Shown: in pieces, positions 4,734 through 61,563 of the stretch | Numbering within the stretch: the first letter of the stretch is position 1 | How the letters are laid out: the number at the start of each line of letters is the position of its first letter | Source of the DNA: Piromyces finnis finn | Taxonomy: Eukaryota > Fungi > Neocallimastigomycota | NCBI GenBank assembly: GCA_002104945.1 | Contig: MCFH01000007.1 | Location: forward strand, 682,001 to 746,000 | Reading direction: 5' to 3' | Length of the DNA stretch: 64,000 nt | The notes under the pieces: model-generated | The model's input: the letters and a program-made list of their open reading frames with translations, nothing else | Database searches by the model: none | What the model was told of the DNA's origin: nothing | Program-made: the position numbers and the translations under genes

Positions 4734-6707
4734 ATGAAGTCTCTTACTATTTTCACTACTTTATTAGCTGTTACTGCTGCTAAGAAGTGTATTGTCAAGG
4801 CTCCAGCTGATGACGTTACTGATGTTAACGCTCCAGCTGCCGATGGTAACATTGCTTCTGATGATGAAGCTGCAAATGTTGATGAACCAATTGCCGATGA
4901 CATTGACTCCGCCGATGAAAAGTCTGATGCTGAAGCTCCAAAGGGTAAACTCCCAGCTAGTTTCAAGTGGGGTGCTGCTACCGCTGCTTACCAAGTTGAA
5001 GGTGCTTGGGATACCGATGGTCGTGGTGAATCCGTTTGGGATTACTTCACCCATCTTTACCCAAAGAACGTCGAATCTGGTGACAGAACTAACCCAGATT
5101 CCACTAACGGTAATGTTGCTTGTGATTCATACCACAAGTTCGACGAAGATGTTAAAATGATGAAAATCATGAAGGCTAACCACTACCGTTTCTCCATCTC
5201 ATGGTCTCGTCTTTTCCCAGATGGTGTTGCTAAGAAGGTTAACGGTAAATGGAATGTTAACGAAAAGGGTGCCGAATACTACGATATGATGATCGATACT
5301 CTTATTGAAAACGACATTACTCCATTAGCTACTCTTTACCACTGGGATCTTCCATATGCTCTTCACGAAAAGTACGGTGGTTGGTTAGATTACCGTTCAC
5401 AAGATGATTTCGCCAAATACGCCGAATTCTGTTTCGAACGTTTTGGTGACCGTGTTAAGGGATGGATCACCATTAACGAACCATGGGTTAACTGTGTTGG
5501 TGGTTACAAGAATGGACCAGGTAAAGCTCCATACAGATGTACTGGTGAAGCACCACGTAAGCTCCAAAACGACACTACCGGACTTGATTTAGAAGGAGGT
5601 TGTTCCTACGAAATTGGTCCATCTCAATACTACAAGGGAGCAGAAGTTCTTCCAGCTGACCGTGCTCCACAAAGATTAGAAGAAGTCTGGTGTTCACACA
5701 ACATTCTTATTGCCCACGCTAAGGCTGTCAATGTTTACCGTAAGAAGTTCCAAAAGAAGCAAAAGGGTCTTATTGGTATTACCGTTGATGGTGAAGCTCA
5801 AATTCCATGGGAAGATGAAAACACCACACCAGAAGAATTAGAAAACAACAAGAAGTACGCCAACTTAGCCGCTGAATTCCGTATTGGTTGGTACTCTGAT
5901 CCACCAATGACTGGTGACTACCCAGAATCCGTCAAGCAAAGAATGGGTAAGGATATGCCAGTCTTCACAGCTGAAGAAAAGAAGCTCTTAAAGGGATCAT
6001 CATCCGACTTCTTAGGTTGGAACACCTACACTGCTCACTGGGCTGAACAAGCCAAGGATGAAGATGGTAAACTCATTGAACCACCAACTGAAGAAGAAGC
6101 CAGCTACGAAAACTCCAAGAAGGATATGTGGGATGATAACTGTAGAGGCCGTGCTCCAGGATGGGTTTGTATTCCACCAACTCTTGGTTCACAAGCCGGT
6201 TCATCATGGAACACCAAGTATGGTCCAACTATTCGTGTTGGTCTTAACTGGTTATACAACCGTTACAAGAGCATTCTTAAGAACGGTATCATTATTACCG
6301 AAAATGGTTGTGCTCAACCAAACTACAAGGTTAGTCGTGCCAATGATCAAGTTACCATTGACTACTTCAAGTCCATTGGTAAGGAAGAATATGCTGATGC
6401 TTACGATGAATCTATTATTGAAGATGAAAGCAACATTGAAGGAACCATTCTCCACGATACTTACAGAATTGACTGGTACAAGCAATACCTTGAAAACCTT
6501 CGTCTTGCCTATGTCGAAGATGGTGTTGATGTTCGTGGTTACATGGCCTGGTCTTTAATTGATAACTTTGAATGGGAAAACGGTTACGAAACTCGTTTCG
6601 GTATGACCTACATTGACTTCTACAATGACAAGGAACTTACTCGTATTCCAAAGGATTCTCTTACATACCTTGCTGAATGGTTCACTGAAAACGTCGAACA
6701 AGAATAA
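4734..6707 (+). CDS. cel1A: Secreted GH1 beta-glucosidase, copy 2, 657 aa (divergent partner of copy 1)
   Basis: Protein identical to copy 1 except for a 1-aa indel in the linker (DDVTDV vs DDVTTDV). Confidence 0.95.
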   Translation: MKSLTIFTTLLAVTAAKKCIVKAPADDVTDVNAPAADGNIASDDEAANVDEPIADDIDSADEKSDAEAPKGKLPASFKWGAATAAYQVEGAWDTDGRGESVWDYFTHLYPKNVESGDRTNPDSTNGNVACDSYHKFDEDVKMMKIMKANHYRFSISWSRLFPDGVAKKVNGKWNVNEKGAEYYDMMIDTLIENDITPLATLYHWDLPYALHEKYGGWLDYRSQDDFAKYAEFCFERFGDRVKGWITINEPWVNCVGGYKNGPGKAPYRCTGEAPRKLQNDTTGLDLEGGCSYEIGPSQYYKGAEVLPADRAPQRLEEVWCSHNILIAHAKAVNVYRKKFQKKQKGLIGITVDGEAQIPWEDENTTPEELENNKKYANLAAEFRIGWYSDPPMTGDYPESVKQRMGKDMPVFTAEEKKLLKGSSSDFLGWNTYTAHWAEQAKDEDGKLIEPPTEEEASYENSKKDMWDDNCRGRAPGWVCIPPTLGSQAGSSWNTKYGPTIRVGLNWLYNRYKSILKNGIIITENGCAQPNYKVSRANDQVTIDYFKSIGKEEYADAYDESIIEDESNIEGTILHDTYRIDWYKQYLENLRLAYVEDGVDVRGYMAWSLIDNFEWENGYETRFGMTYIDFYNDKELTRIPKDSLTYLAEWFTENVEQE

Positions 6708-14314: not shown

Positions 14315-16288
14315 TTATTCTTGTTCGACGTTTTCAGTGAACCATTCAGCAAGGTATGTAAGAGAATCCTTTGGAATACGAGTAAGTTCCTTGTCATTGT
14401 AGAAGTCAATGTAGGTCATACCGAAACGAGTTTCGTAACCGTTTTCCCATTCAAAGTTATCAATTAAAGACCAGGCCATGTAACCACGGACATCAACACC
14501 ATCTTCGACATAGGCAAGACGAAGGTTTTCAAGGTATTGCTTGTACCAGTCAATTCTGTAAGTATCGTGGAGAATGGTTCCTTCAATGTTGCTTTCATCT
14601 TCAATAATAGATTCATCGTAAGCATCAGCATATTCTTCCTTACCAATGGACTTGAAGTAGTCAATGGTAACTTGATCATTGGCACGACTAACCTTGTAGT
14701 TTGGTTGAGCACAACCGTTTTCGGTAATAATGATACCGTTCTTAAGAATGCTCTTGTAACGGTTGTATAACCAGTTAAGACCAACACGAATAGTTGGACC
14801 ATACTTGGTGTTCCATGATGAACCGGCTTGTGAACCAAGAGTTGGTGGAATACAAACCCATCCTGGAGCACGGCCTCTACAGTTATCATCCCACATATCC
14901 TTCTTGGAGTTTTCGTAGCTGGCTTCTTCTTCAGTTGGTGGTTCAATGAGTTTACCATCTTCATCCTTGGCTTGTTCAGCCCAGTGAGCAGTGTAGGTGT
15001 TCCAACCTAAGAAATCGGATGATGATCCCTTTAAGAGCTTCTTTTCTTCAGCTGTGAAGACTGGCATATCCTTACCCATTCTTTGCTTGACGGATTCTGG
15101 GTAGTCACCAGTCATTGGTGGATCAGAGTACCAACCAATACGGAATTCAGCGGCTAAGTTGGCGTACTTCTTGTTGTTTTCTAATTCTTCTGGTGTGGTG
15201 TTTTCATCTTCCCATGGAATTTGAGCTTCACCATCAACGGTAATACCAATAAGACCCTTTTGCTTCTTTTGGAACTTCTTACGGTAAACATTGACAGCCT
15301 TAGCGTGGGCAATAAGAATGTTGTGTGAACACCAGACTTCTTCTAATCTTTGTGGAGCACGGTCAGCTGGAAGAACTTCTGCTCCCTTGTAGTATTGAGA
15401 TGGACCAATTTCGTAGGAACAACCTCCTTCTAAATCAAGTCCAGTAGTGTCGTTTTGGAGCTTACGTGGTGCTTCACCAGTACATCTGTATGGAGCTTTA
15501 CCTGGTCCATTCTTGTAACCACCAACACAGTTAACCCATGGTTCGTTAATGGTGATCCATCCCTTAACACGGTCACCAAAACGTTCGAAACAGAATTCGG
15601 CGTATTTGGCGAAATCATCTTGTGAACGGTAATCTAACCAACCACCGTACTTTTCGTGAAGAGCATATGGAAGATCCCAGTGGTAAAGAGTAGCTAATGG
15701 AGTAATGTCGTTTTCAATAAGAGTATCGATCATCATATCGTAGTATTCGGCACCCTTTTCGTTAACATTCCATTTACCGTTAACCTTCTTAGCAACACCA
15801 TCTGGGAAAAGACGAGACCATGAGATGGAGAAACGGTAGTGGTTAGCCTTCATGATTTTCATCATTTTAACATCTTCGTCGAACTTGTGGTATGAATCAC
15901 AAGCAACATTACCGTTAGTGGAATCTGGGTTAGTTCTGTCACCAGATTCGACGTTCTTTGGGTAAAGATGGGTGAAGTAATCCCAAACGGATTCACCACG
16001 ACCATCGGTATCCCAAGCACCTTCAACTTGGTAAGCAGCAGTAGCAGCACCCCACTTGAAACTAGCTGGGAGTTTACCCTTTGGAGCTTCAGCATCAGAC
16101 TTTTCATCAGCGGAGTCAATGTCATCGGCAATTGGTTCATCAACATTAGCAGCTTCATCATCAGAAGCAATGTTACCATCGGCAGCTGGAGCGTTAACAT
16201 CAGTAACGTCATCAGCTGGAGCCTTGACAATACACTTCTTAGCAGCAGTAACAGCTAATAAAGTAGTGAAAATAGTAAGAGATTTCAT
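14315..16288 (-). CDS. cel1A: Secreted GH1 beta-glucosidase, copy 3, 657 aa
   Basis: Protein identical to copy 2; all GH1 motifs intact. Confidence 0.95.
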   Translation of the reverse strand: MKSLTIFTTLLAVTAAKKCIVKAPADDVTDVNAPAADGNIASDDEAANVDEPIADDIDSADEKSDAEAPKGKLPASFKWGAATAAYQVEGAWDTDGRGESVWDYFTHLYPKNVESGDRTNPDSTNGNVACDSYHKFDEDVKMMKIMKANHYRFSISWSRLFPDGVAKKVNGKWNVNEKGAEYYDMMIDTLIENDITPLATLYHWDLPYALHEKYGGWLDYRSQDDFAKYAEFCFERFGDRVKGWITINEPWVNCVGGYKNGPGKAPYRCTGEAPRKLQNDTTGLDLEGGCSYEIGPSQYYKGAEVLPADRAPQRLEEVWCSHNILIAHAKAVNVYRKKFQKKQKGLIGITVDGEAQIPWEDENTTPEELENNKKYANLAAEFRIGWYSDPPMTGDYPESVKQRMGKDMPVFTAEEKKLLKGSSSDFLGWNTYTAHWAEQAKDEDGKLIEPPTEEEASYENSKKDMWDDNCRGRAPGWVCIPPTLGSQAGSSWNTKYGPTIRVGLNWLYNRYKSILKNGIIITENGCAQPNYKVSRANDQVTIDYFKSIGKEEYADAYDESIIEDESNIEGTILHDTYRIDWYKQYLENLRLAYVEDGVDVRGYMAWSLIDNFEWENGYETRFGMTYIDFYNDKELTRIPKDSLTYLAEWFTENVEQE

Positions 16289-19001: not shown

Positions 19002-20975
19002 ATGAAATCTCTTACTATTTTCACTACTTTATTAGCTGTTACTGCTGCTAAGAAGTGTATTGTCAAGGCTCCAGCTGATGACGTTACTGATGTTAACGCT
19101 CCAGCTGCCGATGGTAACATTGCTTCTGATGATGAAGCTGCTAATGTTGATGAACCAATTGCCGATGACATTGACTCCGCTGATGAAAAGTCTGATGCTG
19201 AAGCTCCAAAGGGTAAACTCCCAGCTAGTTTCAAGTGGGGTGCTGCTACCGCTGCTTACCAAGTTGAAGGTGCTTGGGATACCGATGGTCGTGGTGAATC
19301 CGTTTGGGATTACTTCACCCATCTTTACCCAAAGAACGTCGAATCTGGTGACAGAACTAACCCAGATTCCACTAACGGTAATGTTGCTTGTGATTCATAC
19401 CACAAGTTCGACGAAGATGTTAAAATGATGAAAATCATGAAGGCTAACCACTACCGTTTCTCCATCTCATGGTCTCGTCTTTTCCCAGATGGTGTTGCTA
19501 AGAAGGTTAACGGTAAATGGAATGTTAACGAAAAGGGTGCCGAATACTACGATATGATGATCGATACTCTTATTGAAAACGACATTACTCCATTAGCTAC
19601 TCTTTACCACTGGGATCTTCCATATGCTCTTCACGAAAAGTACGGTGGTTGGTTAGATTACCGTTCACAAGATGATTTCGCCAAATACGCCGAATTCTGT
19701 TTCGAACGTTTTGGTGACCGTGTTAAGGGATGGATCACCATTAACGAACCATGGGTTAACTGTGTTGGTGGTTACAAGAATGGACCAGGTAAAGCTCCAT
19801 ACAGATGTACTGGTGAAGCACCACGTAAGCTCCAAAACGACACTACTGGACTTGATTTAGAAGGAGGTTGTTCCTACGAAATTGGTCCATCTCAATACTA
19901 CAAGGGAGCAGAAGTTCTTCCAGCTGACCGTGCTCCACAAAGATTAGAAGAAGTCTGGTGTTCACACAACATTCTTATTGCCCACGCTAAGGCTGTCAAT
20001 GTTTACCGTAAGAAGTTCCAAAAGAAGCAAAAGGGTCTTATTGGTATTACCGTTGATGGTGAAGCTCAAATTCCATGGGAAGATGAAAACACCACACCAG
20101 AAGAATTAGAAAACAACAAGAAGTACGCCAACTTAGCCGCTGAATTCCGTATTGGTTGGTACTCTGATCCACCAATGACTGGTGACTACCCAGAATCCGT
20201 CAAGCAAAGAATGGGTAAGGATATGCCAGTCTTCACAGCTGAAGAAAAGAAGCTCTTAAAGGGATCATCATCCGATTTCTTAGGTTGGAACACCTACACT
20301 GCTCACTGGGCTGAACAAGCCAAGGATGAAGATGGTAAACTCATTGAACCACCAACTGAAGAAGAAGCCAGCTACGAAAACTCCAAGAAGGATATGTGGG
20401 ATGATAACTGTAGAGGCCGTGCTCCAGGATGGGTTTGTATTCCACCAACTCTTGGTTCACAAGCCGGTTCATCATGGAACACCAAGTATGGTCCAACTAT
20501 TCGTGTTGGTCTTAACTGGTTATACAACCGTTACAAGAGCATTCTTAAGAACGGTATCATTATTACCGAAAACGGTTGTGCTCAACCAAACTACAAGGTT
20601 AGTCGTGCCAATGATCAAGTTACCATTGACTACTTCAAGTCCATTGGTAAGGAAGAATATGCTGATGCTTACGATGAATCTATTATTGAAGATGAAAGCA
20701 ACATTGAAGGAACCATTCTCCACGATACTTACAGAATTGACTGGTACAAGCAATACCTTGAAAACCTTCGTCTTGCCTATGTCGAAGATGGTGTTGATGT
20801 TCGTGGTTACATGGCCTGGTCTTTAATTGATAACTTTGAATGGGAAAACGGTTACGAAACTCGTTTCGGTATGACCTACATTGACTTCTACAATGACAAG
20901 GAACTTACTCGTATTCCAAAGGATTCTCTTACTTTCCTTGCTGAATGGTTCATGGAAAACGTTGAACAAGAATAA
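19002..20975 (+). CDS. cel1A: Secreted GH1 beta-glucosidase, copy 4, 657 aa (divergent partner of copy 3)
   Basis: Identical to copy 3 except for the C-terminal TFLAEWFMEN versus TYLAEWFTEN. Confidence 0.95.
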   Translation: MKSLTIFTTLLAVTAAKKCIVKAPADDVTDVNAPAADGNIASDDEAANVDEPIADDIDSADEKSDAEAPKGKLPASFKWGAATAAYQVEGAWDTDGRGESVWDYFTHLYPKNVESGDRTNPDSTNGNVACDSYHKFDEDVKMMKIMKANHYRFSISWSRLFPDGVAKKVNGKWNVNEKGAEYYDMMIDTLIENDITPLATLYHWDLPYALHEKYGGWLDYRSQDDFAKYAEFCFERFGDRVKGWITINEPWVNCVGGYKNGPGKAPYRCTGEAPRKLQNDTTGLDLEGGCSYEIGPSQYYKGAEVLPADRAPQRLEEVWCSHNILIAHAKAVNVYRKKFQKKQKGLIGITVDGEAQIPWEDENTTPEELENNKKYANLAAEFRIGWYSDPPMTGDYPESVKQRMGKDMPVFTAEEKKLLKGSSSDFLGWNTYTAHWAEQAKDEDGKLIEPPTEEEASYENSKKDMWDDNCRGRAPGWVCIPPTLGSQAGSSWNTKYGPTIRVGLNWLYNRYKSILKNGIIITENGCAQPNYKVSRANDQVTIDYFKSIGKEEYADAYDESIIEDESNIEGTILHDTYRIDWYKQYLENLRLAYVEDGVDVRGYMAWSLIDNFEWENGYETRFGMTYIDFYNDKELTRIPKDSLTFLAEWFMENVEQE

Positions 20976-25962: not shown

Positions 25963-28365
25963 TTTTTTTTTTTTTAGACTAGGAAGAGAATATACATCTT
26001 TTATTTATTTACTTATTTAATTAGTGATATTATATAATATTAGGTGATAATACATATTGATATTGATATAATAAATAATAAATAAAAATAATAAAATATA
26101 TATAAATAAAAATATAAATATAAAAAAATATAAAATAATTATTTAAGTTGCATAAAAGTTCAATGAACTCTACAATTTGTACTGTGTGGGATTGGTCCCT
26201 ACCTAATAAATTAAATGAAATAAAAAAAAGAAGTAACATCAGGTATGATAGTGTGGTGTCCACTAAACTCTCCCATGAGCTCATAATGTTTTCATTCGAA
26301 TTTGAGGAAATACTAACATTGAACCCTGTGTACGGAACATTGGAAATGTTCCTTTGCCATATCAGTACGACGTCGGCGCTCTTGATTACGTTAGGTGTCT
26401 TACTAAACCTATCAAAAAGTAGCTTCATAGAGCTACTAATGATAGGGATTGTTTTAGTAAGAAAAGCCGCGAGACCCTCTACATATGGAACATGAGACCC
26501 CGATGAACTGTAAAGCTGTTCATTCAAATGTCTTTGTTCCGCCTTATCGATTTGTAGCTCATCATAAGCTAAAGTTCCACCAAGAAGGAACGTAAAAATA
26601 TAGTTATAAATTGTTTTTCTTACTTCCGTTTCGGGGAGTAAGTATGTGATGAATTGATTCTTATATTTATTGTAAAAAAGGGTAAAAAGATCGTCAAGAA
26701 AGCTAAGTGAAGAAGCTCTGTATTCAGAGAATGCAGAACATTCTAATATCCAATGATAAAAAGATTGTTCGTCATATCCGCAACATGGACTGACACGAGG
26801 GCAGTCAGGAGTAACTCTATTACTGGCAATAGCAATTCGGGTAGTATTTTCATAACCGCATCGAATACGAATAATCCAGGTAATTCCTAAATTTAAGTAA
26901 GGTTTGTTGAGACCGATATGCATTAGGCGATTTGAATTAAGGAATTTGTTGTTAGTATATCTGAGGGCTTTACTTCCATTATTTAAGCTACTATTATTCC
27001 AATAATGTTCTCTAATATCTTTAGTACTTTTAATATTAATTTTCATAAGCTTCTTATGTAGTGAATAAGATTCTTTGGCCCAAGAGTAATGAGACATGGG
27101 AGGAATAGATCGGACGAGATCTTTAATAATACAATTTGATTTTCTCCATTTAACAAAGCATTTCAATTGTTGCGCAGCACAAATACCTGAAAGGGTAGGA
27201 ATCTTCATATCTCTTGTAAGAGCATACAGACTAATAAATGAATTTCGTTCAAAAACAAAATCTTTGTTATTAAAACTTTTATTGTGAAAGCTATTGACAC
27301 TCCATAAAACAGCAGTATTGGTAAGAGATTGGACTCTTCTAGTTCTATTTTTGTTGGAACCAAGTAAAGGAGCATAATAAGAGACTTTGCTTAAAATATA
27401 AGAATGAATTACTATATTTTTTAAGCCAATAGGAACACAATTGTTGGTGAGGAAGTTCCTAAAAGAGAATAAAGATTTCTGAACTTTTTTGTACATACTA
27501 GACAGAATAGGAGTCAGAGAAAGATCTTCGTCGAATGGGATTCCAAGATAAGTATAACAAGAAACCTTTGGAAATGAGTACATACCGATGTAAAATGTTG
27601 GGTCGACATAACTAGGGGATCTATTAAAGTTAATAGGTTTAACAACAATAGTTGCACATTTATTTATTCCAAGAGACATTTTATTTAAATTAGCCCAATC
27701 AAGGACTAGATTGAGCATCTTTTGAAGGTTCTTCTTACTAGGAGCAATCAAAACAATGTCATCAGCGAAAAGGCCACCACAACAACGTTTATTTCCTAAG
27801 CTAACTCCAAGCCTTTCACATTTATTTAAAATATCATTGATAAAGAGGTTAAAAAGTATAGGAGAAAGAGGACATCCTTGTCTTACACCACGGTTTATAG
27901 GGAATTTATTGGAAAGCATATCCAAAAAACGTGCACGAGCTTTAGAGGTAGAGTAGAGATTATTGAGAAAATCAAAACATTTACCACGTATACCTAATTT
28001 ATATAACTTTGTAAGGATATTAAAAATAGGAACTGAGTCGTATGCTTTTTTAAGTTCTAGAAAGGCGACATAAGTGACTTTTCCTTTAAATTTTCTTCTT
28101 TGACAGAATTCTCTAATGGAAACAAATAAGCTAATACATTCTTCTTTATTGCGAAAACCAAATTGTTCAGATCTTATAAAATTATGAAGAAGAGCATACT
28201 TTGAAATTCTATCAGTTAAAATTTTTGAAATGATTTTAAGACCTACATTGATGAGAGAAATACCACGATAATTATTACAGTCTGAAAGATCGCCTTTCTT
28301 TGGAATAGAAACAATGGAAGCAGAGTTCCATTTCAAAGGAAAGGAACCATTCCTAATTTTATTAA
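25963..28365 (-). mobile_element. 5'-truncated non-LTR retrotransposon (LINE family A) with poly(A) tail and 15-bp TSD
   Basis: ATTAATTTAGTTTAT at 25948-25962 and 28366-28380 brackets the element. A poly(T) on the + strand ends at 25975. Contains the RT ORF. Confidence 0.92.
26030..28336 (-). pseudogene. LINE ORF2 fragment: RT domain plus C-terminal Cys/His zinc finger, no endonuclease
   Basis: Motifs IVSIPKKGDLSDCNNYRGISL, QFGFR, FLELKKAYDSV, GVRQGCPLSPILFNLFIND, FADD, YLGIPF and PCC...HWILEC. The listed start is a TTG at the truncation, not a true start. Confidence 0.9.
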
Positions 28366-29486: not shown

Positions 29487-31463
29487 TTATTCTTGTTCGA
29501 CATTTTCAGTGAACCATTCAGCAAGGTATGTAAGAGAATCCTTTGGAATACGAGTAAGTTCCTTGTCATTGTAGAAGTCAATGTAGGTCATACCGAAACG
29601 AGTTTCGTAACCGTTTTCCCATTCAAAGTTATCAATTAAAGACCAGGCCATGTAACCACGGACATCAACACCATCTTCGACATAGGCAAGACGAAGGTTT
29701 TCAAGGTATTGCTTGTACCAGTCAATTCTGTAAGTATCGTGGAGAATGGTTCCTTCAATGTTGCTTTCATCTTCAATAATAGATTCATCGTAAGCATCAG
29801 CATATTCTTCCTTACCAATGGACTTGAAGTAGTCAATGGTAACTTGATCATTGGCACGACTAACCTTGTAGTTTGGTTGAGCACAACCGTTTTCGGTAAT
29901 AATGATACCGTTCTTAAGAATGCTCTTGTAACGGTTGTATAACCAGTTAAGACCAACACGAATAGTTGGACCATACTTGGTGTTCCATGATGAACCGGCT
30001 TGTGAACCAAGAGTTGGTGGAATACAAACCCATCCTGGAGCACGGCCTCTACAGTTATCATCCCACATATCCTTCTTGGAGTTTTCGTAGCTGGCTTCTT
30101 CTTCAGTTGGTGGTTCAATGAGTTTACCATCTTCATCCTTGGCTTGTTCAGCCCAGTGAGCAGTGTAGGTGTTCCAACCTAAGAAGTCGGATGATGATCC
30201 CTTTAAGAGCTTCTTTTCTTCAGCTGTGAAGACTGGCATATCCTTACCCATTCTTTGCTTGACGGATTCTGGGTAGTCACCAGTCATTGGTGGATCAGAG
30301 TACCAACCAATACGGAATTCAGCGGCTAAGTTGGCGTACTTCTTGTTGTTTTCTAATTCTTCTGGTGTGGTGTTTTCATCTTCCCATGGAATTTGAGCTT
30401 CACCATCAACGGTAATACCAATAAGACCCTTTTGCTTCTTTTGGAACTTCTTACGGTAAACATTGACAGCCTTAGCGTGGGCAATAAGAATGTTGTGTGA
30501 ACACCAGACTTCTTCTAATCTTTGTGGAGCACGGTCAGCTGGAAGAACTTCTGCTCCCTTGTAGTATTGAGATGGACCAATTTCGTAGGAACAACCTCCT
30601 TCTAAATCAAGTCCAGTAGTGTCGTTTTGGAGCTTACGTGGTGCTTCACCAGTACATCTGTATGGAGCTTTACCTGGTCCATTCTTGTAACCACCAACAC
30701 AGTTAACCCATGGTTCGTTAATGGTGATCCATCCCTTAACACGGTCACCAAAACGTTCGAAACAGAATTCGGCGTATTTGGCGAAATCATCTTGTGAACG
30801 GTAATCTAACCAACCACCGTACTTTTCGTGAAGAGCATATGGAAGATCCCAGTGGTAAAGAGTAGCTAATGGAGTAATGTCGTTTTCAATAAGAGTATCG
30901 ATCATCATATCGTAGTATTCGGCACCCTTTTCGTTAACATTCCATTTACCGTTAACCTTCTTAGCAACACCATCTGGGAAAAGACGAGACCATGAGATGG
31001 AGAAACGGTAGTGGTTAGCCTTCATGATTTTCATCATTTTAACATCTTCGTCGAACTTGTGGTATGAATCACAAGCAACATTACCATTAGTGGAATCTGG
31101 ATTAGTTCTGTCACCAGATTCGACGTTCTTTGGGTAAAGATGGGTGAAGTAATCCCAAACGGATTCACCACGACCATCGGTATCCCAAGCACCTTCAACT
31201 TGGTAAGCAGCGGTAGCAGCACCCCACTTGAAACTAGCTGGGAGTTTACCCTTTGGAGCTTCAGCATCAGACTTTTCATCGGCGGAGTCAATGTCATCGG
31301 CAATTGGTTCATCAACATTAGCAGCTTCATCATCAGAAGCAATGTTACCATCGGCAGCTGGAGCGTTAACATCAGTGGTAACATCATCAGCTGGAGCCTT
31401 GACAATACATTTCTTAGCGGCAGTAACAGCTAATAAAGTAGTGAAAATAGTAAGAGACTTCAT
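29487..31463 (-). CDS. cel1A: Secreted GH1 beta-glucosidase, copy 5, 658 aa
   Basis: Protein identical to copy 1. Confidence 0.95.
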   Translation of the reverse strand: MKSLTIFTTLLAVTAAKKCIVKAPADDVTTDVNAPAADGNIASDDEAANVDEPIADDIDSADEKSDAEAPKGKLPASFKWGAATAAYQVEGAWDTDGRGESVWDYFTHLYPKNVESGDRTNPDSTNGNVACDSYHKFDEDVKMMKIMKANHYRFSISWSRLFPDGVAKKVNGKWNVNEKGAEYYDMMIDTLIENDITPLATLYHWDLPYALHEKYGGWLDYRSQDDFAKYAEFCFERFGDRVKGWITINEPWVNCVGGYKNGPGKAPYRCTGEAPRKLQNDTTGLDLEGGCSYEIGPSQYYKGAEVLPADRAPQRLEEVWCSHNILIAHAKAVNVYRKKFQKKQKGLIGITVDGEAQIPWEDENTTPEELENNKKYANLAAEFRIGWYSDPPMTGDYPESVKQRMGKDMPVFTAEEKKLLKGSSSDFLGWNTYTAHWAEQAKDEDGKLIEPPTEEEASYENSKKDMWDDNCRGRAPGWVCIPPTLGSQAGSSWNTKYGPTIRVGLNWLYNRYKSILKNGIIITENGCAQPNYKVSRANDQVTIDYFKSIGKEEYADAYDESIIEDESNIEGTILHDTYRIDWYKQYLENLRLAYVEDGVDVRGYMAWSLIDNFEWENGYETRFGMTYIDFYNDKELTRIPKDSLTYLAEWFTENVEQE

Positions 31464-34232: not shown

Positions 34233-36209
34233 ATGAAGTCTCTTACTATTTTCACTACTTTATTAGCTGTTACTGCCGCTAAGAAATGTATTGTCAAGGC
34301 TCCAGCTGATGATGTTACCACTGATGTTAACGCTCCAGCTGCCGATGGTAACATTGCTTCTGATGATGAAGCTGCTAATGTTGATGAACCAATTGCCGAT
34401 GACATTGACTCCGCCGATGAAAAGTCTGATGCTGAAGCTCCAAAGGGTAAACTCCCAGCTAGTTTCAAGTGGGGTGCTGCTACCGCTGCTTACCAAGTTG
34501 AAGGTGCTTGGGATACCGATGGTCGTGGTGAATCCGTTTGGGATTACTTCACCCATCTTTACCCAAAGAACGTCGAATCTGGTGACAGAACTAATCCAGA
34601 TTCCACTAATGGTAATGTTGCTTGTGATTCATACCACAAGTTCGACGAAGATGTTAAAATGATGAAAATCATGAAGGCTAACCACTACCGTTTCTCCATC
34701 TCATGGTCTCGTCTTTTCCCAGATGGTGTTGCTAAGAAGGTTAACGGTAAATGGAATGTTAACGAAAAGGGTGCCGAATACTACGATATGATGATCGATA
34801 CTCTTATTGAAAACGACATTACTCCATTAGCTACTCTTTACCACTGGGATCTTCCATATGCTCTTCACGAAAAGTACGGTGGTTGGTTAGATTACCGTTC
34901 ACAAGATGATTTCGCCAAATACGCCGAATTCTGTTTCGAACGTTTTGGTGACCGTGTTAAGGGATGGATCACCATTAACGAACCATGGGTTAACTGTGTT
35001 GGTGGTTACAAGAATGGACCAGGTAAAGCTCCATACAGATGTACTGGTGAAGCACCACGTAAGCTCCAAAACGACACTACTGGACTTGATTTAGAAGGAG
35101 GTTGTTCCTACGAAATTGGTCCATCTCAATACTACAAGGGAGCAGAAGTTCTTCCAGCTGACCGTGCTCCACAAAGATTAGAAGAAGTCTGGTGTTCACA
35201 CAACATTCTTATTGCCCACGCTAAGGCTGTCAATGTTTACCGTAAGAAGTTCCAAAAGAAGCAAAAGGGTCTTATTGGTATTACCGTTGATGGTGAAGCT
35301 CAAATTCCATGGGAAGATGAAAACACCACACCAGAAGAATTAGAAAACAACAAGAAGTACGCCAACTTAGCCGCTGAATTCCGTATTGGTTGGTACTCTG
35401 ATCCACCAATGACTGGTGACTACCCAGAATCCGTCAAGCAAAGAATGGGTAAGGATATGCCAGTCTTCACAGCTGAAGAAAAGAAGCTCTTAAAGGGATC
35501 ATCATCCGACTTCTTAGGTTGGAACACCTACACTGCTCACTGGGCTGAACAAGCCAAGGATGAAGATGGTAAACTCATTGAACCACCAACTGAAGAAGAA
35601 GCCAGCTACGAAAACTCCAAGAAGGATATGTGGGATGATAACTGTAGAGGCCGTGCTCCAGGATGGGTTTGTATTCCACCAACTCTTGGTTCACAAGCCG
35701 GTTCATCATGGAACACCAAGTATGGTCCAACTATTCGTGTTGGTCTTAACTGGTTATACAACCGTTACAAGAGCATTCTTAAGAACGGTATCATTATTAC
35801 CGAAAACGGTTGTGCTCAACCAAACTACAAGGTTAGTCGTGCCAATGATCAAGTTACCATTGACTACTTCAAGTCCATTGGTAAGGAAGAATATGCTGAT
35901 GCTTACGATGAATCTATTATTGAAGATGAAAGCAACATTGAAGGAACCATTCTCCACGATACTTACAGAATTGACTGGTACAAGCAATACCTTGAAAACC
36001 TTCGTCTTGCCTATGTCGAAGATGGTGTTGATGTCCGTGGTTACATGGCCTGGTCTTTAATTGATAACTTTGAATGGGAAAACGGTTACGAAACTCGTTT
36101 CGGTATGACCTACATTGACTTCTACAATGACAAGGAACTTACTCGTATTCCAAAGGATTCACTTACATACCTTGCTGAATGGTTCACTGAAAATGTTGAA
36201 CAAGAATAA
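34233..36209 (+). CDS. cel1A: Secreted GH1 beta-glucosidase, copy 6, 658 aa (divergent partner of copy 5)
   Basis: Protein identical to copies 1 and 5. Confidence 0.95.
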   Translation: MKSLTIFTTLLAVTAAKKCIVKAPADDVTTDVNAPAADGNIASDDEAANVDEPIADDIDSADEKSDAEAPKGKLPASFKWGAATAAYQVEGAWDTDGRGESVWDYFTHLYPKNVESGDRTNPDSTNGNVACDSYHKFDEDVKMMKIMKANHYRFSISWSRLFPDGVAKKVNGKWNVNEKGAEYYDMMIDTLIENDITPLATLYHWDLPYALHEKYGGWLDYRSQDDFAKYAEFCFERFGDRVKGWITINEPWVNCVGGYKNGPGKAPYRCTGEAPRKLQNDTTGLDLEGGCSYEIGPSQYYKGAEVLPADRAPQRLEEVWCSHNILIAHAKAVNVYRKKFQKKQKGLIGITVDGEAQIPWEDENTTPEELENNKKYANLAAEFRIGWYSDPPMTGDYPESVKQRMGKDMPVFTAEEKKLLKGSSSDFLGWNTYTAHWAEQAKDEDGKLIEPPTEEEASYENSKKDMWDDNCRGRAPGWVCIPPTLGSQAGSSWNTKYGPTIRVGLNWLYNRYKSILKNGIIITENGCAQPNYKVSRANDQVTIDYFKSIGKEEYADAYDESIIEDESNIEGTILHDTYRIDWYKQYLENLRLAYVEDGVDVRGYMAWSLIDNFEWENGYETRFGMTYIDFYNDKELTRIPKDSLTYLAEWFTENVEQE

Positions 36210-40625: not shown

Positions 40626-42785
40626 ATGAATAAAACATTATATTTATTTATTACTTTATTGATATTAACTTTTGCCACCGCAAAAAGATGTGGTAAGGAT
40701 GTTGGTGAATGTGATGAAGGTGAATGTTGTAGTAAGTATGGTTTCTGCGGTAAATCTAAAATGTATTGTGGAAGTGGATGTCAATCTGAATATGGTTTAT
40801 GTGATGAAGAAAAGATAGTTACCATTACTAAAACCGCCTATAAGGCTAAACATACTCCATCACCAGATCTTGCCGAAAAAATTATAGAAGAAGTCGATGA
40901 AGTCGTTGTTGATGATTTAAATGATGATAAAATTGAAGAAATCAATCAAATCATTGAAAATGCTGTCGATGAAGACATTAATTTAGATAGTGAAAATGAA
41001 GAAGATGTTGATGTTGATGATGCTATCAATGTTGATGATGATAATGAAGAAGTTGAAGAAGTTAAAGAAGATTCTGAAAGTGATTCTGAAAGTGAAGTTG
41101 AAGTTGAAACCACTATTGTAGTCACTGTTACTGTCACTGAAGCTCCAACTGAAGAAGAATCTGAAATTATTGAAGATGATGGTGACAACAATGATGATCA
41201 TAACGACGAAGATGATCAAAACACTGATGTTATTGAAGATGATAACAATGATGAAGATGATAACAATGATGATGAACCAGATTGCAGCAAACCAGAAAAC
41301 AAGGACTTACCAGAATGTGCTCCAGATTGCAGCAAACCAGAAAACAAGGACTTACCAGAATGTGCTCCAGACTGCAACAAACCAGAAAACAAGGACTTAC
41401 CAGAATGTGCTCCAGATTGCAGTAAGCCAGAAAACAAGGACTTACCAGAATGTGCTCCAGACTGCAACAAACCAGAAAACAAGGACTTACCAGAATGTGC
41501 TCCAGATTGCAGTAAGCCAGAAAACAAGGACTTACCAGAATGTGCTCCAGACTGCAACAAACCAGAAAACAAGGACTTACCAGAATGTGCTCCAGATTGC
41601 AGTAAGCCAGAAAACAAGGACTTACCAGAATGTGCTCCAGATTGCAGCAAACCAGAAAACAAGGACTTACCAGAATGTGCTCCAGATTGCAGCAAACCAG
41701 AAAACAAGGACTTACCAGAATGTGCTCCAGATTGCAACAAACCAGAAAACAAGGACTTACCAGAATGTGCTCCAGCTACCACCACTACTACTAAGACCCC
41801 AGAACCAACCACTACTACCACTACTACCACCACTACCACCACTACCACTACTACTACCACCACAACTACCACCACTACCACCACTACCACTACTACTACC
41901 ACCACAACTACCACCACTAAAGCCACTACTACAAAGGCTCCACAACCAACTGGTTGTTCCACTGAAGCTTTCGGTATTGTTTCCAAGTTCAATGCTTTCT
42001 TCTTTGGTGATTTCACTGGATACAGCTCTGATGTTCAAGGTAGATTAGCTGCTAAGGGTACTATTAACATTAGCGGTGGATACCAAAACAATGCTTTCGC
42101 ATTTGATCCAGTCAACCACAGTCGTCAATCCAACTACAAATGTAATGAATCTCCACTTAAGGATGACTTCAAATATGCTATTGTTGCTGGTACTCTTAAC
42201 TTTAGAGATGGTGGTGAAATTTCCAATGGTGGTGTTGCCTACTTAAACAGTGCTAACATGCCAGGATACATTGCTGAAAGTATTAAGAACCACAACTGTC
42301 CAAATGAAAAGAAGAGTGTTATTGATTTCGATTCTGAAAGACAAAAGCTTATTAACCTTTCCAAGAAATTAGGTAGCACTACTGCCAAGTGTAAGAAGAC
42401 TGTTCAATGGGGTACTGTTACTGTTGATTTAGTCAAGGGTGAAAAGACTTGTATTGTTAATCTTGACAGTTTAGAAAACATTTACACCTTCAAGATTAAT
42501 GAAAATGGTGCTAGTGACTTTACTATTGTTTTCAACATTAATGGTAGTACTGTTAACTTTACCAACTTTGATATCTTCAATCTTAACAAGTATGCCACTA
42601 AAATTCTTTGGAACACTCCAAATGCTTCCAAGGTTAATATTCAAAACTTTAGAATTCAAGGTTCTCTTTTAGCTCCAACTGCCGATATTGAAGGTACCAA
42701 TGGTAATATTCAAGGTATTATTATCGGTAATAGTTTAAAGGGTAATTTACAAATGGATTGGGTTCCATTCTACGGTTGCATCTAA
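40626..42785 (+). CDS. Secreted modular protein: CBM18 chitin-binding domain, acidic linker, 11x 15-aa Cys repeat, Thr-rich linker, choice-of-anchor-A-like C-terminal domain (719 aa)
   Basis: Signal MNKTLYLFITLLILTFATA. Hevein/CBM18 pattern CG...C..G.CCSKYGFCG....YCG.GCQ..YG.C. The C-terminal FNAFFFGDF..YSSDVQGRLAA.G and ILWN.PNA..V.I...GSLLAP.A...GNIQG.IIG motifs resemble choice-of-anchor A domains. Confidence 0.85.
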   Translation: MNKTLYLFITLLILTFATAKRCGKDVGECDEGECCSKYGFCGKSKMYCGSGCQSEYGLCDEEKIVTITKTAYKAKHTPSPDLAEKIIEEVDEVVVDDLNDDKIEEINQIIENAVDEDINLDSENEEDVDVDDAINVDDDNEEVEEVKEDSESDSESEVEVETTIVVTVTVTEAPTEEESEIIEDDGDNNDDHNDEDDQNTDVIEDDNNDEDDNNDDEPDCSKPENKDLPECAPDCSKPENKDLPECAPDCNKPENKDLPECAPDCSKPENKDLPECAPDCNKPENKDLPECAPDCSKPENKDLPECAPDCNKPENKDLPECAPDCSKPENKDLPECAPDCSKPENKDLPECAPDCSKPENKDLPECAPDCNKPENKDLPECAPATTTTTKTPEPTTTTTTTTTTTTTTTTTTTTTTTTTTTTTTTTTTTTTKATTTKAPQPTGCSTEAFGIVSKFNAFFFGDFTGYSSDVQGRLAAKGTINISGGYQNNAFAFDPVNHSRQSNYKCNESPLKDDFKYAIVAGTLNFRDGGEISNGGVAYLNSANMPGYIAESIKNHNCPNEKKSVIDFDSERQKLINLSKKLGSTTAKCKKTVQWGTVTVDLVKGEKTCIVNLDSLENIYTFKINENGASDFTIVFNINGSTVNFTNFDIFNLNKYATKILWNTPNASKVNIQNFRIQGSLLAPTADIEGTNGNIQGIIIGNSLKGNLQMDWVPFYGCI
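41277..41771 (+). repeat. 45-bp coding tandem repeat x11 (PDC[S/N]KPENKDLPECA)
   Basis: Counted directly: 11 units, differing only in the first 15 nt of each unit. Confidence 0.95.
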
Positions 42786-43496
42786 ATTATTTAATTTATT
42801 CCTATTATACATTATTCCATTATTTATTAAAAAAAAAATAATAATTATAAATATTATATAACTATTATTCCTATATATATATCCTATAAAATTAAAATAT
42901 TTATATATAAAAAAAAAGAAACAACAATAACTAAAAATATAAACTTATTATTATTAATATATTAATATTATTTATTATTAAGTTAAAAATGAAATAGTTT
43001 TGAATTTTTTTTTAAAAAAAAAAAAACAACCTTTGAAATGAAAAATAATATTTTTTTTTATTTCTATTCTATAGAATAATAACTATTTTCATTTTTCCTA
43101 CATTAATAATATTTAATATGTAAATTATAAACATAAAAATATATAAAATATATAAAATAAAAAAACAAACTAAACTAAAAAAAAAAAAAAAAACTAAAAA
43201 CAAAAAATAGAAATATAAAATTATAGAATTTTTGAAAAAAAAAGTGATTTCAAAAAGATAACAAATAAATATTATAAATAAATAAAAAAAAATATTAAAT
43301 AATAAAAAGTATGTTTATTATTTTAAAAGTGAGTGTTTCGTGTGTATCAAAAAAAAAAATTACAGGCAATGATAGTGATGCCATTAGATGTAAAAAGTGA
43401 TTTAAAAGATTGCTAAACGGTAATATGTTCGTTCCAAGGAAACTTTTTTTTTTTTTAAAAACAATATTATAAAAGAGAATGATCTTTTTCAAAATA

Positions 43497-44915
43497 CGAT
43501 GGGTTGCCGGAGTTCATAAAGCTGTATCGTTTATATCTTTATACTCTATCTCAAAAGATTTGAACATTCCTCCATTGTCAGCCAAATGTGTGTTAGCTCA
43601 GGTTAGATGTTTTAACAAATGGAAAAACTCAAATTGTATTATCTCACACCTTGTCAATTACATTCCTAAATTTAGAAAATACACGTGGTGCAAATCAAGT
43701 AGGTCACTTGATAAAAAATTAGAGAAGCATGGAGATGTTAAAGCAGTTAAAAACTTTTATTGGAAAGATCTCAAAGGGAATTCAATCAAAGCGCAATATT
43801 ATGATGATAATAAGTTTATTGAAACTAAAGATTTTATTAAATTATGTTATGAGTACCCAGAGTTTGCCTATGGCTTCTACTGGCTATTGAAAGCAAGAAG
43901 CGGATATAAGTTGGATGCTAGAGTTGCCAAAGCTGCTAAATTTGTTGATCCAGTTTGTCCTAACTACTGTCCATGTTGCAAGTGTGGTGTTCAAAGTATT
44001 AAACATTAGTTATTAGATTGTCCAACATTTAGAGATATCCGTATTAAACATTATGATTCCATAGTCCAGCTATTAAATTTTTTCAGTCAACGTAATTCCA
44101 ATAGTCCTATCAATAATAATGAAATTGATAATGTCAGTAGAGATAGCAATAACAGTAATAGTAATAGTAACAATAATAATAATAACAATAGTAATAATAA
44201 CAATAGTAGTAATAGTAATAATAGAAATAGTAATAATAACAATAGTAGTAATAGAAATAATAATATTAATAATGATAGCAATAGTGAAGATAATAATTCT
44301 AATTTAGATAGTAATTTAGTTAATGATAGTAATAGTTCTAATAATCCGGTGAATATTAATGTGTATGATTATTCTAGTGTGTGCAGTAAAATATTTAAAT
44401 TCCTTCTTGGGGGAAGAAGTTTTAACAATATCAATTACAATTCAAGGGAATGGAAAGAACTTTGTAAGTGTCAGATTCAATCTGGTACTAACGAAGGAAC
44501 ACCATTCTTGACGGTAACCGCGGAACTTCTAACCAAAATCATGCCTTTTGCTATTGGCCAGCAATGGTCAATGTTCAAAAGGTTTGAAGCAACATCCAAG
44601 AGCGTCAATGCTGAAGAAACAGTAAGACAGGCCAGGAGGGCCAGCGCAACCAATGGAGATCATAATTTTGTTCCATGACAAAATTTTGATCTTTGGCTCG
44701 GTGTCCCATTGGAAGTCAAATACAATTATTATACTTTAGTATGATAGTGGCTTTCTTACTTTAATTAAAATTACTAGAATACATTATACCCAATTTTTAT
44801 TCATTTGTGTTTATTTAAACATATTTTTTTTATTTTTATTTTTATTTTTTAATTTTTTATTACATGTATTATAATTTTAATTAAATTAATAATAAAGTTT
44901 AAAATATTTGATGCC

Positions 44916-60642: not shown

Positions 60643-61563
60643 TTATTCTTCATCTTTCTTTTCTTCTTCTTTTTCTTCTTCACCTTCAGCCTTAGTACGT
60701 TGCTTAAGGTTTTCAGAAGTTACATTTTCTTCAACATTTTCAGTTTCAAGAGCTTCAGTTTCTTTTTCTTCTTCTTCTCCTTCTTGCTTCTTTTCTCTAA
60801 GTTCATCAATGGTTTGTTGTAAACCCTTTCTCTTTGGACGGTTAACTAAAAGTAAACTAGCGAATGGGAAGGCACAAAGAATAAAACCAAGAGTACCAAA
60901 GATTGGGTTCTTCTTAAAAGCAGTAATTGGATCCTTCTTGAATTCTTCAGCAAAGACAGCGATCTTTTCCTTTAATCCTGGTTCACCGTTATTCTTTAAC
61001 ATTTCTTCCTTTTCCTTGGCGGCTTCCTTTTCAAATTCAATCATTTCAATCTTGTTCTTAACAACCCAAGTTTGTTTGGCAAATTCTTCAGCATCAGCTT
61101 CACTGTGACCAACGTAAATGTTATCAAACATAATTTGGTTTTGCATAGTCCAGAGTTCAAAACCAATAGCAGTCATTGGTTCAAAGTTGTGTGGTTCGTT
61201 GTCTTCGTAATAGTTTGGATTTGCTGTTTTTTTTTTTTTTTTTTTTTTTTTTACATATATAGGTATTGATTATTAATATATTTACTTTAAAAAAAAAAAA
61301 AAACAATTATATATATACAATTTTTAATTTTTAGATAGAATGGTTATAATACATACGAATCTTTCTTGGAGCCCATGGACCCTTGTAATCTGGATTGTCA
61401 ATGTATGGAGCCTTCCATTTACCCTTGAATTCTGGGTTCTTCTTCATTGGACGAGTCCATTCACCACAGTTGTTGTTTTCACATTTTGGATTTGCTATTT
61501 TTTATTTATTTATTTATTTATTATTGTAAATTAACATATATACAATTAATATAATCAAATTTC

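Follow-up and report, generated by a model that had tools for sequence, protein, structure and literature searches.

How anaerobic gut fungi hold on to plant fibre and to methanogens is poorly understood at the molecular level. A gene of Piromyces finnis raises the question of whether a chitin-binding module joined to a second, distal domain could provide such a hold and, if so, where that second domain came from. The gene is located on the plus strand at positions 40626-42785 of the 64,000-nucleotide stretch of contig MCFH01000007.1 analysed here, which is referred to below as the window. It encodes a predicted secreted protein of 719 aa, in which an N-terminal CBM18 module is connected by a long stalk to a C-terminal domain of the choice-of-anchor A (CAA) type. 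The reading that we prefer, and hold with middling confidence, is that this protein would be secreted and, without being an enzyme, act at the surface as a lectin or adhesin with two heads, and the family to which it belongs represents a concrete, conserved and easily expressed candidate for the attachment problem.

The gene was identified as a single intact open reading frame (ORF) in the ORF list, with an ATG start and the stop codon included; given the GC content of the window (15-39%), a frame of this length is not explicable by chance. Because the frame is continuous and collinear end to end with those of its homologs, the coding region is intronless, in agreement with an earlier note on this DNA that had been made from the letters alone. 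The gene and its parts are as follows:

40626-42785, plus strand: complete intronless gene for a secreted CBM18-stalk-CAA protein (ORF, domain calls and collinear homologs)
40626-40682, plus strand: signal peptide, residues 1-19, with the n-region MNK, a hydrophobic core and ...ATA followed by KR (sequence reading)
40683-40805, plus strand: CBM18 (hevein) module, residues 20-60, with eight Cys (PF00187 and alignment to lectins)
40806-41276, plus strand: acidic region, residues 61-217 (composition and conservation of motifs in orthologs)
41277-41775, plus strand: 45-bp tandem array, residues 218-383 (TRF)
41775-41954, plus strand: Thr-rich mucin-like linker, residues 384-443 (composition and a weak match to the Pfam Mucin model)
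41955-42782, plus strand: CAA or pAdhesive_15 domain, residues 444-719 (PF20597, TIGR04215 and AlphaFold model)

The succession of signal peptide, CBM18, acidic region of about 160 aa, 11 Cys repeats, poly-Thr linker and C-terminal domain that the earlier note had described was thus recovered in full by the ORF, the Pfam and NCBIfam searches and the dissection of the protein. The signal peptide call represents a reading of the sequence combined with a Kyte-Doolittle profile, rather than the output of a predictor: the top 19-residue windows are all located at residues 1-5, the protein is nowhere else hydrophobic, and the N-terminal signal sequence was shown by alignment to be kept in homologs. 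The Pfam model PF00187 (Chitin_bind_1) matched residues 21-54 with 34.4 bits in the whole protein and 37.5 bits in the isolated segment (cut-off 27.8). The identity of the C-terminal region as a CAA domain, which the earlier note had proposed, was borne out by PF20597 (pAdhesive_15; residues 449-710, 165.1 bits, cut-off 23.8, E=3.7e-48, model positions 2-252 of 254) and by TIGR04215 (choice_anch_A; residues 454-716, 131.7 bits, cut-off 29, E=3.8e-38, model positions 2-254 of 255).

No dockerin (CBM10), scaffoldin repeat or further family was detected at E<=1 in the Pfam scan of the protein, and no LPXTG, PEP-CTERM or type IX sorting module at E<=1 in Pfam and NCBIfam. Neither a glycosylphosphatidylinositol (GPI) signal nor a transmembrane segment was found: the C-terminus (...DWVPFYGCI) lies inside the folded domain and lacks a hydrophobic tail, and because the CAA domain reaches the last residue, neither element can fit. 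The protein thus carries no transmembrane segment, GPI signal or dockerin, as had been noted earlier.

In the CBM18 module, the eight Cys (residues 22, 29, 34, 35, 41, 48, 52 and 59) exhibit hevein spacing, and all of them align with those of the hevein domains of wheat-germ agglutinin (WGA) and pokeweed lectin-C. Residues S36, Y38, F40 and Y47 were shown by alignment to match the CCSxYGxCG...YCG motif of the WGA domains; we take these to be sugar-binding positions of the WGA Ser62/Tyr64/Tyr66/Tyr73 type, which contact GlcNAc in WGA and hevein. As such GlcNAc-contacting positions are conserved, the module looks competent, and the predicted CBM18 appears intact for chitin binding. A search with the N-terminal 130 residues retrieved CBM18 modules of similar type whose partners were leucine-rich repeat (LRR) domains or a PLA2G12-like domain, as well as arrays with three to seven CBM18 copies. 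The presence of CBM18 on many other passengers in gut fungi fits a general role as a wall anchor. Among individual gut-fungal proteins, P0189, P0190, P0191 and P0194 were observed to combine CBM18 arrays with LRR solenoids or a PLA2G12-like phospholipase domain.

At the other end of the protein, AlphaFold modelling of the CAA head, for which 15 relatives were aligned, produced a right-handed, three-faced β-helix with a long packing α-helix, which resembles the ice-binding proteins (pLDDT 84.8, pTM 0.87). This bears out the earlier expectation of a β-helix and matches earlier descriptions of the CAA family fold. Comparison of the model with the ice-binding protein FfIBP (7ehk) using VIA-align gave Z 15.8, with a root-mean-square deviation (rmsd) of 3.2 Å over 195 residues, and Foldseek assigned a probability of 1.0 to the match with DUF3494 ice-binding proteins. 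The best 26 structural matches (Z 14.2-15.8) are all DUF3494 ice-binding proteins or the pilus protein ComZ; the C-domains of Caldicellulosiruptor tapirins rank next (Z 9.2-9.6, ~170 residues), and pectate-lyase-type β-helices reach only Z ~3.

No match to PF11999 or to an ice-binding family was obtained for the head in Pfam at E<=1, and a profile search against the sequences of the PDB returned no ice-binding protein and no other match with a solved structure. As modelled, the CAA head is therefore similar to the ice-binding proteins in fold, not in sequence. Four Cys (444, 506, 558 and 718) are conserved in the domain. An ice-binding function was rejected on account of the missing sequence-level match and of the biology, as ice binding is useless to a gut fungus living at ~39 °C. 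A reading of the head as an enzyme was likewise rejected, since no catalytic family was matched and the pectate-lyase-type helices are so distant.

The two heads are separated by three dissimilar segments. The acidic region comprises 157 aa, of which 43% are Asp or Glu, and contains conserved submotifs, namely a strand-like IVTITKT (residues ~64-71), two predicted amphipathic helices (81-93 and 100-120) and a second strand-like stretch, TTIVVTVTVTE (~164-174). These motifs (xTITKT, the two helices and TxVxTxxVTE; positions 40815-41138 of the window) are common to orthologs and to paralogs that lack CBM18, and may represent a small module that folds or tends to aggregate. Confidence in the linkers was low when the full-length protein was modelled with AlphaFold (pLDDT 59-71 for the helices and below 50 for the strands), and at that confidence no docking of the conserved motifs on CBM18 or CAA was seen. 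TRF resolved the array that follows into a 45-bp unit present in 11.1 copies (94% matches, score 907); the array encodes 11 near-identical 15-aa repeats, PDC(S/N)KPENKDLPECA, which contribute 22 Cys across residues 218-382. The Piromyces sp. E2 ortholog possesses five Cys repeats, which are more diverged, as compared with 11 in the present gene, and such a difference in repeat number between Piromyces species would be expected of adhesin stalks. The Thr tract at residues 384-443 consists of 75% Thr, encoded by imperfect ACC/ACT codon repeats, and is likely to form an O-glycosylated stalk.

A word search with the CAA domain identified 21 relatives, all but one of which derive from anaerobic gut fungi or gut metagenomes. 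Named carriers of the same CAA domain are Piromyces sp. E2 (82% identity), Neocallimastix californiae, N. lanati and Orpinomyces. PF00187 and PF20597 are both present in 14 of the 21, Orpinomyces included. Across the homologs, good alignments were obtained for the signal peptide, for CBM18 and for the CAA domain, with the CAA heads being 48-82% identical, whereas the linkers vary in length and sequence and are unalignable, yet acidic and Thr/Pro-rich throughout. For the CAA head, comparison with Piromyces sp. E2 gave a nonsynonymous rate (dN) of 0.10, a synonymous rate (dS) of 0.64 and a ratio (omega) of 0.16, indicative of purifying selection on the head, while the stalk evolves fast.

Conservation of the CBM18-stalk-CAA architecture across gut-fungal genera is thus supported at the sequence level. 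The E2 ortholog (PIROE2DRAFT_69398; KZ150899.1, 115772-136408) is annotated with a non-secretory N-terminus, which is an artefact of a gene model bridging runs of N; its signal peptide and CBM18 were probably lost in an assembly gap. The E2 locus is interrupted by long runs of N, and the gene alone aligns between the two species.

Part of this picture is already known or annotated, namely the CAA family, its fold, the fact that gut fungi possess it and the role that it has in other eukaryotes as a wall lectin or an adhesive. A passing remark of 2019 mentioned proteins with three to five CAA domains in Piromyces and Neocallimastix, there miscalled oomycetes (PMC6541295). The conserved CBM18-stalk-CAA architecture was not found in the searchable literature, nor was evidence placing the gut-fungal head in a eukaryote-type subfamily that is shared with a chytrid, or the Cys pair as its marker.

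Considering these parts together, the following mechanism can be proposed. Upon cleavage of the signal peptide, the N-terminal CBM18 would grip the chitin of the fungus's own wall non-covalently, which would both anchor and orient the protein. The stalk of ~385 residues, made up of the acidic segment, the variable Cys-repeat array and the probably O-glycosylated poly-Thr tract, would span the wall and carry the CAA head outward. The flat faces of this distal β-helix would then bind an ordered solid, most likely the crystalline cellulose of plant fibre, and the protein would thereby hold the walls of cysts or rhizoids fast to their substrate.

Cellulose is proposed as the ligand because of the analogy with the Jonah lectin of Acanthamoeba and with the cellulose-binding β-helices of tapirins. 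Jonah(1), which consists of a signal peptide, a Thr-rich spacer and one CAA domain, binds Avicel cellulose and localises to the cyst wall when fused to maltose-binding protein (MBP) or green fluorescent protein (GFP) (PMC6541295; 10.1101/2024.02.02.578540), and tapirins bind cellulose approximately as well as CBM3 (10.1101/359786). A bolder proposal would be that the CBM18-stalk-CAA family represents the missing fibre-attachment device of these fungi, with its ice-binding-like β-helix as a new, non-CBM binder of crystalline cellulose that came from zoosporic ancestors, is displayed on the chitin wall of rhizoids and encysting zoospores and is possibly induced by methanogens; taken as a whole, this is doubtful.

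Several observations weigh against the two-headed adhesin. The Jonah constructs that bound cellulose included the Thr/Lys/Cys-rich spacer (PMC6541295), so that cellulose binding is unassignable to the CAA fold alone. The Jonah CAA domain itself binds the amoeba's own wall, and the outward orientation of the head could therefore be reversed. A shared fold does not amount to a shared ligand. A lone hevein module is a weak chitin binder compared with multivalent lectins. Three close paralogs (P0011, P0012 and P0016) consist of signal peptide, stalk and CAA domain without CBM18, so that attachment of the family to the wall may not depend on CBM18. The RNA evidence is weak: words of the C-terminal domain were found in four small runs from three studies other than the possible source, and one of the four yielded, within 41935-43435, an exact 873-nt contig that covers the head at very high word depth and ends at the stop codon. 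The types of the runs, that of the one with the contig included, are guesses, and the remaining runs and the DNA source run show holes over this interval; the comparison left out the 45-bp array and the poly-Thr tract. Transcription of the gene is plausible, and the 873-nt contig fits a transcript without proving one.

The main rival to an outward-facing adhesin is a structural wall lectin of the Jonah type, with both heads binding polymers of the fungus's own wall, or of the zoospore-cyst wall, so as to cross-link or coat it. This is the strongest of the alternatives, even if we regard it as rather unlikely. It is favoured by the paralogs without CBM18, which would reach the wall via their CAA domain, and by the fact that one hevein module on its own should bind only weakly. 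Jonah-1, moreover, has the same layout and is abundant in the ectocyst layer of the Acanthamoeba wall, a layer that is labelled by the chitin-binding lectin WGA. Chitin binding by Jonah was variable between fusions, as MBP-Jonah(1) also bound chitin beads, whereas Jonah(1)-GFP did not bind chitin (PMC6541295). Cellulose, the better ligand of Jonah, is not known from gut-fungal walls, and a stalk of 385 residues with a fast-changing number of repeats is more typical of display, both of which argue against this alternative.

The second part of the question concerns the origin of the CAA head, which the earlier note had called bacterial-type and horizontally acquired. When 1.84 billion representatives were searched exhaustively with a profile, 3947 relatives were obtained (E<=1e-3); the majority of the best 150 listed look bacterial. 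Outside the gut fungi, prokaryotes included, the best single domain reached 165 bits, as compared with 424-512 bits inside the CBM18-CAA clade. The scan of 185,579 prokaryotic genomes revealed no relative above ~30% identity and no rumen taxon. The named prokaryotic matches (Lysobacterales, Moduliflexus, Sphingomonas, Fimbriimonas, Thermomicrobiales, Capsulimonadales and a metagenome-assembled genome (MAG) of Methanococcaceae) are 25-30% identical and environmental, with no rumen fibre degrader among them.

The nearest relatives outside the gut fungi were found to be eukaryotic. The CAA gene of the chytrid Cladochytrium replicatum is spliced and nuclear, being located on a 441-kb contig next to genes for Laa1/HEATR5, Maf1 and a class II tRNA synthetase. 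Further carriers are the aphelid Amoeboaphelidium occidentale and the vampyrellid Leptophrys vorax, and another CAA-bearing contig encodes TBCC, RXT2 and CCDC137. A word search with the eukaryote-type alignment over the range of 160-509 aa added no further named fungi and left one chytrid with the domain; a CAA gene of Mucor lusitanicus has been mentioned (PMC11943222). No Jonah sequence was identified among the best 150 matches listed.

In a maximum-likelihood tree of 82 rows, eight of the nine named bacterial loci formed one clade (98/97), with the gut-fungal clade (100/99) and thus every gut-fungal domain outside it; the nodes between the gut fungi and other eukaryotes are weak. In a focused tree of 50 rows with a bacterial root, the gut fungi, Cladochytrium and Leptophrys grouped in one clade (98/94). 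The Cys pair C506/C558 was found in 22 of 23 gut-fungal domains, in 16 of 20 other eukaryote-type domains and in 11 of the 148 remaining domains; those 11 are eukaryote-like proteins outside the bacterial clade, from which the pair is essentially absent.

Judged from these comparisons, the CAA head is a member of a eukaryote-type subfamily, other members of which occur in a chytrid, an aphelid and protists, and its presence predates the divergence of the gut-fungal genera. The head is more likely to have zoosporic relatives in common with it, whether through descent or through transfer between eukaryotes, than to come from rumen bacteria, and an ancient bacterial source for the entire eukaryotic subfamily is possible. 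Certain results weigh against this assignment. Approximately unbiased (AU) tests failed to reject trees in which gut fungi and bacteria are placed together (P=0.3 and P=0.12). As they reject neither arrangement, the grouping with the chytrid rests on the 98/94 support and the Cys pair. The groups were set after the first tree had been viewed, and several eukaryotic rows are long-branched; furthermore, the trees were built without the CAA domains of Jonah, the diatom Trailins and M. lusitanicus.

That the gut fungi gained the domain from bacteria, plausibly in the rumen, by horizontal transfer and then added a fungal anchor is accordingly weighed as an alternative, which appears unlikely. The very large size of the family, the bacterial look of most of the best 150 of its 3947 members, the patchy distribution among eukaryotes and the AU results are consistent with such a transfer, and published work inferred a bacterial source for the CAA domains of Acanthamoeba and diatoms. 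The low identity and bit scores of the prokaryotic domains, the environmental provenance of the best named ones, the bacterial clade that leaves out the gut fungi, the clade shared with the spliced Cladochytrium gene and Leptophrys, and the near absence of C506/C558 from the bacterial clade all argue against it. The family is also not listed in the accessible text or supplements of two surveys of horizontal gene transfer in gut fungi. As worded, the terms bacterial-type and horizontally acquired are thus unsupported. Grouping with fungal homologs, the outcome that the earlier note had considered fatal to its proposal, was observed in the 98/94 clade, while the AU tests leave a bacterial placement unrejected.

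Two further CAA proteins were recorded during these searches. P0079, a protein of 1077 aa, is encoded in a Methanococcaceae archaeon MAG, so that the family also occurs in archaeal bins. P0046, of 1387 aa, is encoded at L010:5266-9429 on a 16-kb metagenome contig of dense ORFans that also encodes a PP2C phosphatase and an NAD-dependent DNA ligase with BRCT; in its layout, this contig looks like a giant virus or an unusual bacterium.

Returning to the two-headed adhesin, its distal head could alternatively bind the surfaces of methanogens or bacteria and keep such syntrophs on the hyphae, a reading that we consider improbable. When Caecomyces churrovis was co-cultured with Methanobacterium bryantii, the strongest induction among genes of the CAZy classes, on all substrates, was that of CBM18-only genes, and a role in the physical association of fungus and methanogen was proposed (PMC8665504). 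The induced genes, whose function is obscure, include those for the single-CBM18 proteins 607438 and 526368, and a phospholipase A2 gene was also induced (PMC8665504 and its supplement). Bacterial CAA proteins are, in addition, surface proteins of the adhesin type. Conversely, the supplementary tables of the same study hold no CAA annotation for the induced CBM18 genes (PMC8665504), and no CAA domain is known to bind a cell surface.

A secreted soluble protein with another role, such as a shield of chitin against rumen chitinases or an enzyme, would be in keeping with the absence of a covalent anchor and with the established masking of chitin by CBM18-type lectins in other fungi, but is highly improbable, as no catalytic family was matched at E<=1, pectate-lyase-type helices fall far below the ice-binding proteins (Z ~3 versus 15.8), and a large, conserved second domain under purifying selection would be superfluous for masking.

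The two-headed surface lectin or adhesin remains the preferred reading, and the gene appears to be a good experimental candidate rather than a surprise. Should the CAA head bind cellulose, a β-helical, ice-binding-like fold would join the cellulose-binding modules of fungi, many uncharacterised 'CBM18-only' genes of gut fungi would acquire a function, and a handle for engineering attachment in biomass conversion would become available. The locus also calls for caution, in that a domain named in databases as bacterial has a eukaryote-type subfamily, and a nuclear gene of a chytrid is among its members; for this reason, CAA is not countable as a gut-specific horizontal transfer where a proper tree is lacking.

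Upstream of the gene, the window contains the amplified cellobiase locus that had been noted earlier, and which proved to be real. It comprises six ORFs of 657-658 aa for GH1 enzymes (β-glucosidase/cellobiase), identified from the ORFs as follows:

1032-3008, minus strand: GH1 ORF
4734-6707, plus strand: GH1 ORF
14315-16288, minus strand: GH1 ORF
19002-20975, plus strand: GH1 ORF
29487-31463, minus strand: GH1 ORF
34233-36209, plus strand: GH1 ORF

These form three divergent inverted pairs, and the nearest ORF ends at 36209, 4.4 kb upstream of 40626. Every GH1 ORF contains a nested, same-strand ORF of 166 aa, which is probably a by-product of composition. A reverse-transcriptase ORF of 768 aa (RVT_1, E=2.2e-35) is located between GH1 pairs at 26030-28336 on the minus strand, and a retroelement may have contributed to the amplification. 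No meaning of the adjacency between the CAA gene and the GH1 array has been demonstrated; the E2 ortholog is surrounded by assembly gaps and, downstream, by a GH10 xylanase with a dockerin. Directly downstream of the CAA gene, an ORF of 176 aa (43479-44009, plus strand), possibly a gene, drew no match from Pfam; its C-terminus is rich in Cys (...CPNYCPCCKCG...). A further ORF (60643-61176, minus strand) matches the last 22 positions of the calreticulin model (E=2.6e-5, below the cut-off) and probably represents a single exon from a spliced gene for calreticulin/calnexin.

Among known systems, the closest in description is Jonah-1 of Acanthamoeba castellanii (ACA1_164810), which likewise combines a signal peptide, a Thr-rich spacer and a single CAA β-helix of the ice-binding-protein fold and has no membrane anchor. 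This wall-associated protein has an unstructured spacer of ~170 aa and lacks CBM18, the acidic region and the Cys-repeat array. Jonah is a cyst-wall component of a cellulose-walled amoeba with demonstrated cellulose binding, whereas for the fungal protein cellulose is the proposed ligand. The Trailins of the diatom Craspedostauros australis are also secreted, carry CAA domains with Pro/Thr/Ser-rich repeats, lack a membrane anchor and are predicted to adopt an ice-binding-like fold. Trailins serve underwater surface adhesion and are confined to secreted adhesive trails rather than being tethered to the wall; they have no chitin-binding module, and their authors inferred a bacterial origin (10.1101/2023.03.06.531300). 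The bacterial CAA proteins (e.g. Bacillus anthracis BA_0871 and PEP-CTERM forms such as P0183) are extracellular members of the same hidden Markov model family, and end in LPXTG, PEP-CTERM or type IX signals or adjoin collagen-binding domains. The fungal protein differs from them in its N-terminal CBM18, its ~25-30% identity and its eukaryote-type Cys pair.

With respect to fold, the DUF3494 proteins (FfIBP 4nu2/7ehk, TisAFP 3vn3, LeIBP 3uyu and AnpIBP 7bwx) superimpose on the CAA head with an rmsd of ~3.1 Å over ~190 residues, but are only 11-17% identical to it. The tapirins of Caldicellulosiruptor (4wa0, 6n2b and 6n2c) represent a β-helical, cellulose-binding surface adhesin of a plant-fibre degrader; they are bacterial and associated with type IV pili, and their match to the head is much weaker than that of the ice-binding proteins, with no sequence similarity.

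The other passenger proteins of gut-fungal CBM18, such as LRR-CBM18, resemble the present protein in being secreted with hevein-type modules and in lacking transmembrane and GPI anchors. They usually carry three to seven CBM18 modules, often at the C-terminus, as opposed to the single N-terminal copy and different passenger observed here. Finally, the yeast adhesins Als, Flo and Epa are GPI-anchored, whereas the present protein has no GPI signal, is of reversed topology, with its predicted anchor being N-terminal and non-covalent, and has unrelated binding domains; what it shares with them is secretion and a Ser/Thr-rich stalk of tandem repeats variable in copy number that would display a folded binding domain.

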